From Octopus sinensis (lineage: Eukaryota): a stretch of 64,000 nucleotides of DNA. The notes under the pieces were generated by a model. It saw nothing but the letters and a program-made list of their open reading frames with translations. It was not told the DNA's origin and did not search any database. Both the position numbers and the translations under genes were made by a program. Below, piece by piece: positions 9,942 through 60,659 of this stretch. The DNA lies in the NCBI RefSeq assembly GCF_006345805.1, contig NC_043001.1, positions 110,050,001-110,114,000 of the forward strand. Direction: 5' to 3'. Within the stretch, counting starts at the first letter, position 1, and every line of letters starts with the position of its first letter.

Positions 9942-10187
9942 TATATATATATATATAAGTATAATAATAAAGGCTAAATTTAACTTAACTAATTAATTAA
10001 TAATAGATAATTTTACCAAGTAGTTCGGTATGTTAAAAGAAGTTGAGTTGCGTGAGTTGCTGAGTATTGCTGCCTGGGAGATCTCTTATGGTAGTAAAAT
10101 AGTAGTTTAACTGCTATTTCTAAATTTCGGTATGTGGTGAAGCAAATTTTGCTGAACCCTAATTATAATTATACACATAATTATAGA

Positions 10188-18888: not shown

Positions 18889-19292
18889 TATTTCTTTACC
18901 ACCAACAGAGAGGACAAACAAGGACAGACAAACGGATTAAGTCGATTATATCGACCCCAGTGCGTAACTGGTACTTATTTAATCGACCCCGAACGGATGA
19001 AAGGCAAAGTTGACCTCGGTGGAATTCGACCTCACAACGTAGCGGCAGACGAAATACCTATTTCTTTACTAACCACAAGGGGCTAAACATAGAGGGGACA
19101 AACAAGGACAGACAAACGGATTAAGTCGATTATATCGACCCCAGTGCGTAATTGATACTTATTTAATCGACCCCGAAAGGATGAAAGGCAAAGTCGACCT
19201 CGGCGGAATTTGAACTCAGAACGTAACGGCAGACGAAACACCGCTAAGCATTTCGCCCGGCGTGCTAACATTTCTGCCAGCTCGCTGCCTTA
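18889..19292 (-). mobile_element. SINE group B: one head plus two tandem body units
   Basis: Head GGCAGCGAGCTGGCAGAAATGTTAGCACGCCGGGCG and a duplicated body. Confidence 0.9.
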
Positions 19293-38796: not shown

Positions 38797-38884
38797 ATAT
38801 ATATATATAGATATATGTAAATTTGTATATGCATATATATATATGTACATATTTACATGCATGTATGCATATGTATATATATAT

Positions 38885-39110
38885 TTCGTTACTACCCACA
38901 AGGGCTAAACATAGAGGGGACAAACAAACAAGGACAGACAAAGGGATTAAGTCGATTACATCGACCCCAGTGTGAAACTGGTACTTTATTTATCGACCCC
39001 GAAAGGATGAAAGGCAAAGTCGACCTCGGCAGAATTTGAACTCAGACTGACGAAATACCGCTAAGCATTTCACCCGGCGCGCTACCGTTTCTGCCAGCTC
39101 GTCGCCTTCA
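38885..39110 (-). mobile_element. SINE group B monomer
   Basis: Colinear with the other group B copies. Confidence 0.9.
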
Positions 39111-39170: not shown

Positions 39171-39310
39171 TTAGGTATGGGTTTCATAAAGGAAGTAATT
39201 ACTGTGTTGACAATAGAAACGAGCAAGCTGCAATATGAAAGCTATTGATTTCATTTTCTTAAAGACTTGGGATGAAACGATTCCAATATTGAGTTGCGTC
39301 CATTGAAAAC
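39171..39310 (-). CDS. Candidate second coding exon of the secreted-protein gene (GFQWTQLNIGIVSSQVFKKMKSIAFILQLARFYCQHSNYFLYETHT*)
   Basis: Strong acceptor gtgttttctttcag. Open in the phase-1 frame required by the exon at 39591-39717. TAA lies 1 nt before a possible donor G|GTAAAC. Confidence 0.4.
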
Positions 39311-39590
39311 CTGAAAGAAAACACGATCGCATTGGAGAATACACGTTCTTTGGCTTGAAGTTATACAATCCTCTGTGTGGTGAGTGGGCGAGTCATCGAG
39401 AACACGTTCTATGAGTTCATGGTAAAATGCGATCAGTGAGTTAACCATAATAATTTAACAATAAATTGAAACCACATGATAATCACAGCTTTTAGATTGG
39501 CGTTTGAAAACGACTCTGAAGTAGACGAACAGTGAGTATTAGCCGTTGCTTAAAAGGGATATGTGACAAAACATGAAACTTTGCACTCAC

Positions 39591-39717
39591 CTTCGGGGAA
39601 CGCGGGATCTTCGTAACTTTTGAAAGGAAATTCCTCGTAGTCGATATATCGTCCCCCGGTAGTAGCGCAAAGCATATGGAATATGCAGCACCAGAAAATT
39701 ACCAACAAGTGTCGCAT
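39591..39717 (-). CDS. First coding exon of an unidentified secreted or membrane protein: signal peptide plus acidic segment
   Basis: Acceptor tcttttttttcttcgtttccag|AT-ATG and donor GAAG|GTGAGT (phase 1). Encodes MRHLLVIFWCCIFHMLCATTGGRYIDYEEFPFKSYEDPAFPE. GC-richer than the flanks. Confidence 0.75.
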
Positions 39718-39904
39718 ATCTGGAAACGAAGAAAAAAAGATTTTTAAAAACTAATAACGACAATGCTTAATTGCGGTGTTCTACCTCAGTAATACCTGAA
39801 GCTTTAAAGACATTAATTTGCGTGTTATAATCATTTCAGTTTGTTTTAGAATAGAAATTCAACGAAAACCTTAAGTGACACTGATGTTAAATGTTTAGGA
39901 GTGA

Positions 39905-42229: not shown

Positions 42230-42750
42230 TAGGCACAAGGCCCGTAATTTTCGGGGGTGGGGGCCAGTCGATTAGATCGACCACAGTACGCAACTGGTAC
42301 GTAATTCATCGACCACGAAAGGTTGAAAGGCAAAGTCGACCTTGGCGGTATTTGAACTTACTTCTTTACTGCCCACAAGGGGCTACACACAGAGGGGACA
42401 AACAAGGACAGACAAACGGATTAAGTCGATTATATCGATCCCAGTACGCAACTGGTATGTAATTCATCGACCACGAACGGTTGAAAGGCAAAGTCGACCT
42501 TGGCGGAATTTGAACTTAATTCTTTACTGCCCACAAGGTGCTACACACAGAGGGGACAAACAAGGACAGACAAACGGATTAAGTCGATTATATAGACTCC
42601 AGTGCGTAACTGGTACTTATTTAATCGACCCCGAAAGGATGACACGCAAAGTCGACCTCAGCGGAATTTGAACTCAGAACGTAGCGGCTGACGAAATACC
42701 CCAAAGCATTTCGCCCGGCGTGCTAACGTTTCTGCCAACTCGCCGCCTTC
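42230..42750 (-). mobile_element. SINE group B with tandem, internally deleted 158-bp units
   Basis: TCTTTACTGCCCACAAG recurs at 42363 and 42521. Single head at the 42750 end. Confidence 0.9.
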
Positions 42751-42871
42751 AGATAGTTGTATAATGAACAGATAAGAATGCCCATCAGGAACCTGGTGCG
42801 CAGTGCACAACGTGCAGAAAATTAGCAAACAAAATTTCCTACAAATCATACAATGTATAGACAACAGATCA

Positions 42872-43820: not shown

Positions 43821-43920
43821 NNNNNNNNNNNNNNNNNNNNNNNNNNNNNNNNNNNNNNNNNNNNNNNNNNNNNNNNNNNNNNNNNNNNNNNNNNNNNNNN
43901 NNNNNNNNNNNNNNNNNNNN
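43821..43920. other. Assembly gap (100 N)
   Basis: Run of n. Confidence 1.
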
Positions 43921-50964: not shown

Positions 50965-51232
50965 GTACATGTATATATATACGTGTCAGTGGACAAGAAA
51001 GTAAAAAGAAAAAAAGGGGTACTCGAATCATTATATAGAATTACATGTACTCTTATTTTTGATAGCATATGAATTTTGCTCCATGCATTTCAAGAGTCTT
51101 GTATGCTGGTCATTCGATCACCCATACCTGACGAGCTAGGTTCGTATGACGAGCTTACGAAACTTTAAGTTGTAATGACCCTGATCAAACTTACTAAAAA
51201 GTAATATATATACATACATACATATATATATA

Positions 51233-51271
<39 letters not shown>

Positions 51272-60077: not shown

Positions 60078-60380
60078 GTGGAGGCACATAGCCTAGTGGT
60101 TAGAGCAGCGAACTCGCGGTCGAGGGATCACGGGTTCGAATCTCAGACCGGGCGATGTGTGTGTTCATGAGCGAAACACCTAAGTTCCACGCGGCTCCAG
60201 CAGAAGGTCATGGTGAACCTCTGCTGACGCTTTTGCCACAACTTTCTCTCTCTTGCATCTTGCAGCCCACCTGCGACGGACCGGCGTACCGCCCAGGTGG
60301 GGAACCTATACGCCAAGGAAACCGGGAAACCGGCCCTTATGAGCCAGGTGTGGCTCGAGAAGGAACTAACAACAACAACA
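60078..60380 (+). mobile_element. SINE with group C head and core but a different 3' tail
   Basis: GTGGAGGCACATAGCCTAGTGGTTAG..GAGCGAAACACCTAAG..CCACAACTTTCTCTC shared with 26685-27066. Tail GGAAACCGGCCCTTATGAGCC..GGCTCGAGAAGGAAC-(AAC)n. Confidence 0.85.
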
Positions 60381-60659
60381 GATATAGCGTCGACAATGGC
60401 GACCACGACCACAGCTACTATTCTTAGAACGACAAGAATTATGATGAGGACACCAATGACGATGATGATGATGTTAATAATGACGGTGTCGATAATATGG
60501 AAATAGATTAGACATAGTAAGAACGTTATTTCAGGCGGTGGATTGTCAGAAGTGTAAGAGAATCGGAAAAATTGTTTTCAGTTCTGCGTTGAAAGACAAC
60601 CGACGGCCATTTTGTCTTTCACCGCCGTGGAGTCCAGAAGATATCATTTTAAATATAGC

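Follow-up and report, generated by a model that had tools for sequence, protein, structure and literature searches.

A predicted signal-peptide exon of LOC115212419, an annotated but functionally uncharacterised EF-hand gene, in Octopus sinensis

The exon at 39591-39719 and its gene

The window analyzed here is a stretch of 64,000 nucleotides of Octopus sinensis DNA (NC_043001.1, positions 110,050,001 to 110,114,000), in which position x corresponds to position 110,050,000 + x of CM016863.1 (GCA_006345805.1). An exon of the annotated gene LOC115212419, referred to below as exon 1, was located on its minus strand together with the flanking splice signals. Its features are as follows (a slash marks a splice junction or, in the protein, a cleavage site):

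39720-39740, minus strand: acceptor, a polypyrimidine tract plus AG (tctttttttcttcgtttccag); the exon begins at 39719
39591-39719, minus strand: signal-peptide exon of LOC115212419, consisting of a 2 nt leader, 42 codons and 1 base
39715-39717, minus strand: start codon ATG with G at -3, the annotated CDS start in O. sinensis, O. vulgaris and Argonauta hians
39652-39717, minus strand: codons 1-22, MRHLLVIFWCCIFHMLCATTGG, predicted cleavable signal peptide, 100% identical in nucleotide sequence to Argonauta
39591-39651, minus strand: codons 23-42 and the first base of codon 43, RYIDYEEFPFKSYEDPAFPE(G), acidic Tyr/Phe/Pro-rich N-terminal tail of the predicted mature protein
39582-39590, minus strand: donor of intron 1, GTGAGTGCA, phase 1 (GAAG/GTGAGT); the intron runs from 39590

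The minus strand across the exon reads tctttttttcttcgtttccag/AT ATG CGA ... CCC GAA G/GTGAGT, and the 42 codons translate as MRHLLVIFWCCIFHMLCATTGGRYIDYEEFPFKSYEDPAFPE, with a single extra base G at 39591. Read through without splicing, the frame reaches a stop after 55 codons; an exact database look-up of this 55-aa frame returned no record. The acceptor, the ATG 2 nt into the exon, the 42 codons, the donor at 39591/39590 and the 55-codon read-through had all been given in an earlier note on this DNA, and each proved exact to the base.

The 43 residues of the exon are exactly residues 1-43 of XP_029637188.1 ("uncharacterized protein LOC115212419", 114 aa), confirming the proposal of a genuine minus-strand coding exon; the product is longer than the 82-88 aa that had been claimed. 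In O. sinensis, 39591-39719 is coding exon 1 and maps to 10001-10127 of the O. sinensis locus that was used for comparison (L003). The reverse complement of window positions 1-43820 is identical to positions 5898-49717 of that locus, the exact match being compared over 1-43820; a run of 100 N, an assembly gap, occupies 43821-43920. We put the probability at roughly 95% that 39591-39719 is the signal-peptide exon of annotated LOC115212419 of O. sinensis and O. vulgaris, the product of which is most likely a secreted or luminal Ca2+-binding protein. The O. bimaculoides orthologue is LOC106884362 (XP_052824099.1, isoform X1).

A set of 1.84 billion representative proteins was scanned exhaustively by HMMER, with exon 1 joined to the second exon proposed in the earlier note as query. 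One significant relative was returned (E 3.3e-13), which aligned to query residues 1-44 only. This protein was GAB1598987.1, "uncharacterized protein LOC115212419 [Argonauta hians]", of 113 aa, and its use as query recovered XP_029637188.1. The scan found the family through exon 1 and left the presumed second exon unmatched. The second HMMER match, P0002 (E 6e-4), a 1085-aa repeat protein with repeated "EADFPQDWA"-type segments, was judged compositional. The 90%-identity cluster of XP_029637188.1 also holds XP_036358890.1 and XP_036358891.1 (identical protein), CAI9723411.1 and CAI9723412.1 of O. vulgaris, XP_052824099.1 of O. bimaculoides and the UniRef entry A0A0L8IHQ1. A word-indexed protein search with the 43-aa exon as query gave a false "no candidate" despite the presence of an exact 43/43 entry in the same collection, short queries being unreliable with this tool.

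The gene had been described as hidden, and is present in RefSeq, GenBank and UniRef: it is already annotated in three Octopus genomes and in Argonauta, and functionally uncharacterised. Its exon therefore carries little weight as a discovery. The LOC115212419 and LOC106884362 records are all named 'uncharacterized protein' and carry neither function nor expression data, and EF-hand domain matches are already on record for the gene. A literature search with the peptide and the accession numbers found no paper naming these records.

The structure of the gene was analyzed in the loci of A. hians (L001), O. vulgaris (L002), O. sinensis (L003) and O. bimaculoides (L004). Sets of GT-AG exons that could yield the annotated proteins were enumerated by brute force; a single set resulted for each of A. 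hians, O. vulgaris and O. sinensis, and each reproduced the annotated protein exactly. The coding exons are of 127, 144 and 74 nt in Octopus and of 124, 144 and 74 nt in Argonauta, and both introns are in phase 1 in O. sinensis, O. vulgaris and A. hians. This reconstruction agrees with the phase-1 intron that the earlier note had placed after a signal-peptide-like N-terminus, and the same gene structure is kept in O. vulgaris, O. bimaculoides and A. hians. Intron 1 measures 40,968 nt in O. sinensis, 42,587 nt in O. vulgaris and 10,905 nt in A. hians; pattern matching in the O. bimaculoides locus gave about 40.8 kb. Intron 2 is 2.3 kb long. Relative to the window, the remainder of the gene is placed as follows:

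1-39590, minus strand: the first 39,590 nt of the 40,968 nt of intron 1, with many SINEs and microsatellites and without a recognisable coding exon
-1521 to -1378, minus strand: exon 2 (144 nt), 1.4 kb past the left edge of the window (51096-51239 in the O. sinensis locus)
-3861 to -3788, minus strand: exon 3 (74 nt), 3.8 kb past the left edge

No further exon was found in the window because exons 2 and 3 lie just off its left edge. Filtered reading-frame segments of the minus strand between 39750 and 1, assembled as 9 pseudo-proteins, were scanned against Pfam; the sole match was PTEN_C2 at E 0.68, which is noise. Exon 1 alone was matched when the Argonauta protein was searched against the window by tblastn.

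At least one exon further upstream of exon 1, as claimed in the earlier note, is supported by the gene models. The O. bimaculoides isoform X1 protein starts with MKD followed by MRHLL..., and its first exon (ATGAAAG/gtcagt), 38.3 kb upstream, is joined to exactly the acceptor of exon 1, completing the codon G/AT. The three RefSeq accessions of O. sinensis (XP_029637188.1, XP_036358890.1 and XP_036358891.1) represent one identical protein, indicating transcript variants that differ outside the coding region. In Argonauta an AG is present at the matching position and alignable sequence starts exactly there, the upstream intron being unalignable. The O. bimaculoides upstream exon had no match within the window, and its O. 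sinensis counterpart is probably past the right edge. A search for an upstream exon or promoter, in which 24 kb upstream of the exon in Octopus was compared with 10 kb in Argonauta, found no unique conserved block.

The predicted protein

The N-terminus has the layout of a signal peptide, with an n-region MRH, a 14-residue hydrophobic core LLVIFWCCIFHMLC and a c-region ATTGG/R. The Kyte-Doolittle mean is 2.49 over 15 residues from residue 4, and small residues stand at -1 and -3 of G22/R23. A positive n-region, a hydrophobic core of 7-15 residues and small residues at -1 and -3, the features by which signal peptides are judged, were thus all found in residues 1-22. A crude signal-peptide rule lets through 10 of the window's 456 open stretches that start with ATG and have at least 42 codons, exon 1 included. 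Cleavage is predicted at G22/R23, and cleavage and export would be expected from this layout.

The 20 residues of the tail that follows include 6 D+E, 2 K+R and 6 Y+F. The Argonauta tail has a like make-up in another sequence, with 64% nucleotide identity from codon 27 on. The mature chain would have about 92 residues and ends in VRWNF, without an HDEL-type signal. The hint at a neuropeptide precursor or toxin in the earlier note was not borne out, as the mature chain has no cysteine, no GKR/GRR motif and no repeated peptide; R49-K50 is the sole basic pair that is conserved, and an EF-hand domain takes up the C-terminal two thirds.

The earlier note had recognised no family. The full protein is over the Pfam thresholds for EF-hand_1 (PF00036, 30.0 bits vs a cut-off of 25.4) and EF-hand_6 (PF13405, 28.3 vs 25) at residues 80-108 in Octopus, the Argonauta orthologue being just under both cut-offs (22.1 and 22.7 bits, respectively). 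In the loop D88-V-N-R-N-Q-M-I-S-K-S-E99, positions 1 (D), 3 (N), 5 (N), 8 (I), 9 (S) and 12 (E) fit the consensus; position 6 is Gln, not the usual Gly, in both Octopus and Argonauta. The score for an EF-hand pair (PF13499, EF-hand_7) was 23.3 bits, below the cut-off of 30. In the alignment with calmodulin the place of a partner hand is taken by residues 51-62 (NLEGPVLNRFSQ). This segment is degenerate (Pro at position 5, Asn at 8, Gln at 12), and its sequence is not kept in Argonauta. The top solved relatives were GCAP1, calmodulin and centrin at E 3e-5 and weaker (3e-5 to 1e-4 for GCAP1 and calmodulin), a generic similarity. An AlphaFold2 model built from a two-sequence alignment had a mean pLDDT of 62, too poor to judge packing, and its comparison with the PDB by Foldseek gave nothing under E = 2.8.

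Taken as a whole, the product is most likely a small Ca2+-binding protein, either secreted or residing in the secretory-pathway lumen. Residues 1-22 would act as a cleavable signal peptide directing the protein into the secretory pathway, and the acidic Tyr/Phe/Pro-rich tail looks like a substrate for tyrosine sulfation. After the tail would come a helical domain made up of one degenerate EF-hand-like segment (about residues 51-64) and the near-canonical EF-hand with the loop D88-E99, and pairing of molecules through the single good EF-hand would be possible. Signal-peptide cleavage, secretion, sulfation and calcium binding are all predictions of this model.

The gene could be real and its N-terminus be something other than a cleaved signal, either a membrane anchor or, with a start at Met15, the leader of a cytosolic EF-hand protein. 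The public models disagree at this end: O. vulgaris CAI9723412.1 begins at Met15 (100 aa) and would be without a working signal peptide, and the older O. bimaculoides model A0A0L8IHQ1 (78 aa) is without exon 1 and has another short first exon (MVLFFS...). Most EF-hand proteins, moreover, are cytosolic. We nevertheless regard this reading as unlikely, since a core of about 14 residues would be short for a transmembrane segment and is of the length usual in cleaved signals, no part of the gene is better conserved than the first 26 codons, a pattern that would be odd for an untranslated leader, and the RefSeq models of two species begin at or before Met1.

The secreted or luminal EF-hand protein that we prefer was compared with known systems. 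Residues 52-108 align with the end of the second EF-hand, the linker and the third EF-hand of calmodulin; GCAP1 is the best match, over a shorter stretch (residues 76-107). Proteins of the calmodulin/GCAP/centrin type have four EF-hands, whereas LOC115212419 has one that is near-canonical, with Gln for Gly at loop position 6, and they lack its signal peptide and acidic tail; the similarity, of about 27 bits, is generic. MCFD2 and the CREC proteins (reticulocalbin, calumenin, Cab45) share the layout of LOC115212419, a signal peptide followed by one or more EF-hands, and are luminal or extracellular. MCFD2 is small (146 aa) and has 2 canonical EF-hands, and the CREC proteins have 6-7 and an HDEL-type retention ending. 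LOC115212419, in contrast, has one near-canonical EF-hand and ends in RWNF, which sets it outside both groups, and no MCFD2 or CREC chain was among the best 60 PDB sequence matches, no specific similarity being found.

Octopods are without a shell. In molluscs more widely, the EF-hand is one of the domain types among shell-matrix proteins (PMC6641155). The acidic tail together with a calcium motif would suit a mineral-associated role, but no sequence relationship of LOC115212419 to shell-matrix or extrapallial EF-hand proteins was found, and a link to statoliths, stylets or the argonaut egg case is speculative.

A side observation concerns the segment GRYIDYEEF (39625-39651, minus strand, about residues 23-31), which looks like the latter half of an EF-hand loop with the beginning of the exit helix; calmodulin has GTIDFPEF. 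The segment may be a relic of an ancestral EF-hand, the first half of which was replaced by the signal peptide. The string "YEDPAFP" was considered as a calpain FxDxxFP motif and dropped, the downstream Pfam scans being empty.

Conservation and constraint

Between O. sinensis and O. bimaculoides the exon is identical at 129 of 129 nucleotides, and the acceptor tract and the donor are identical too. The next 400 bases of the intron have 33 mismatches (about 8%), and the 220 bases upstream of the exon have 27 mismatches and 8 gapped positions. At the rate of the intron about 11 differences would be expected in the exon, and 0 were observed. The splicing of exon 1 is predicted from the gene models plus this conservation.

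Octopus and Argonauta share an intact frame that differs by a single in-frame codon indel. The A. hians annotation takes its name from the Octopus gene and may have been derived by homology, in which case it would not be independent evidence; the conservation of the sequence does not depend on it. The dN/dS ratio between Octopus and Argonauta is 0.65 overall, 0.87 in the tail, 0.98 in exon 2 and 0.17 in exon 3, where most of the EF-hand loop and the exit helix are encoded. Constraint thus appears weak over much of the protein, with the ratio about 1 in exon 2.

These ratios bear on the possibility that LOC115212419 is a young, octopod-only gene under little protein constraint, drifting or decaying and without an important calcium-binding function. 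Such a history would account for the values overall, in the tail and in exon 2, and would agree with the Gln for Gly at loop position 6 and with the presence of members in octopods only. It is hard to reconcile with a frame, exon sizes and splice phases that are intact in four genomes, with the ratio of 0.17 in the EF-hand exon, where the loop, DVNRNQMISK(S/T)E, differs between Octopus and Argonauta at one non-ligand position, or with a tail that keeps its acidic and aromatic make-up though its sequence changes. We give this account perhaps one chance in ten.

The part of the gene that changes least is the coding sequence of the predicted signal peptide. Octopus and Argonauta are 100% identical over an 82-nt stretch made up of the acceptor AG, the 2 leader bases and the first 78 coding bases. 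This block is located as follows:

about 39638-39721, minus strand: frozen block of identity between Octopus and Argonauta hians (9997-10078 in the A. hians locus, L001)

Identity falls to 79% (pS 0.28) over the other 88 codons, and the adjoining upstream intron is unalignable. Zero synonymous change over the approximately 16 synonymous sites of these 26 codons has a probability of about 0.005 at the rate of the remainder of the gene. An RNA structure behind the frozen 80 nt or so was sought, and the z-scores, of -1.3 to -2.1, were not exceptional.

It is conceivable, if rather improbable, that the signal-peptide coding sequence carries a second function at the nucleotide level. The block may be the substrate structure of RNA editing, a translational or ER-targeting RNA element, or a conotoxin-like frozen signal joined to a fast-changing mature end. 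RNA-editing substrate structures are known to freeze neighbouring sites in coleoid cephalopods. If the block does have a second function of one of these kinds, the octopod-only, secreted EF-hand protein would offer a compact example of it.

A profile search with both orthologues against 5.8 billion proteins recovered these two clusters only, and no further protein with an N-terminus of this kind came out of the exhaustive HMMER scan, which was run with exon 1 and the presumed second exon; more distant relatives of the EF-hand part were sought with the word-indexed tool only. On these data the family appears restricted to octopods in the databases searched, as the lineage restriction of the earlier note had it. 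The interest for cephalopod biology is that of an octopod-only, uncharacterised family in which a single EF-hand follows a predicted signal peptide and an acidic tail that may be sulfated, and in which the signal-peptide coding sequence is unusually frozen, synonymous sites included.

Splice signals, the open frame at 39172-39310 and repeats

Splice sites were scored on both strands (128 kb) by weight matrices of metazoan frequencies, the scores being approximate, and were compared with an order-3 Markov null, with 40 simulated windows for the pair test. The donor of exon 1, at 12.5 bits, is the top donor of the 128 kb, where the null expectation is 0.7 equally good; the acceptor, at 11.4 bits, is within the top 7 on both strands, vs a null expectation of 8.4. 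Each is thus unremarkable singly. The window has one acceptor and donor pair of this quality that is spaced by 50-400 nt and encloses an open frame, and the 40 simulated windows have none. The exon region has a single copy within the window. CpG was uninformative as a promoter or exon signal, the window having an observed/expected ratio of 0.97 and the exon being just in the top 3.6% of windows.

Downstream of exon 1 a second splice-like signal is followed by an open frame:

39172-39310, minus strand: decoy exon with a 10.8-bit acceptor at 39310 and a phase-compatible open frame of 46 codons

The earlier note had joined exon 1 to this segment through a 280-nt intron, with 39310-39172 as terminal exon, giving a stand-alone secreted protein of 82-88 aa. 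The acceptor, the 46 codons open in O. sinensis and an AATAAA at 38990 speak for such a gene, which seemed plausible from the signals by themselves; comparison with relatives makes it very improbable. Codon 15 of the decoy frame is TAA in O. vulgaris and O. bimaculoides and CAA in O. sinensis, so the frame is open in O. sinensis only; a stop in orthologous octopus sequences is what the earlier note itself had named as speaking against its gene, and the finding applies to the second exon. The segment diverges at the rate of the surrounding intron, and no counterpart was found in Argonauta. None of the five models of the cluster ends in the decoy's frame, all five having the EF-hand C-terminus, and the annotated, conserved splice partner of exon 1, which completes the EF-hand domain, is 41 kb off: the true exon 2 lies 40,968 nt downstream, outside the window. 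On these comparisons 39172-39310 is to be placed outside the gene. The case calibrates the reading of raw sequence by eye, which was right about the short first coding exon, about its phase and about there being an exon upstream; the nearest good acceptor with an open frame was a decoy, and the true partner was 41 kb away.

That no gene is present, and exon 1 is a chance open frame between chance splice-like signals, we consider next to impossible: AT-rich DNA does yield many hydrophobic open frames and T-rich tracts, and donor and acceptor are singly at about the frequency of the null model, but the combination of the two is missing from the null windows, the match to an annotated protein is exact, the exon is identical in two Octopus species beside an intron that differs by about 8%, and homologous exons with the same boundaries are present in Argonauta.

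The window and related loci contain many copies of a SINE family, with 82-93% identity (for example 18905-19292 and 42266-42755). One copy, at 38882-39108, lies about 60 nt past the stop codon of the decoy and supplies the AATAAA at 38990.

A GC-rich patch at about 60,100-60,400 was considered as a promoter and holds a tRNA-like SINE head instead. Rfam and tRNA (ARAGORN) scans of the window called nothing, the tRNA-like sequence included. This sequence, GGAGGCACATAGCCTAGTGGTTAGAGC...GGTTCGAATCTCAGACC, lies inside the patch at about 60100-60180 on the plus strand and is probably the head of a tRNA-derived SINE.
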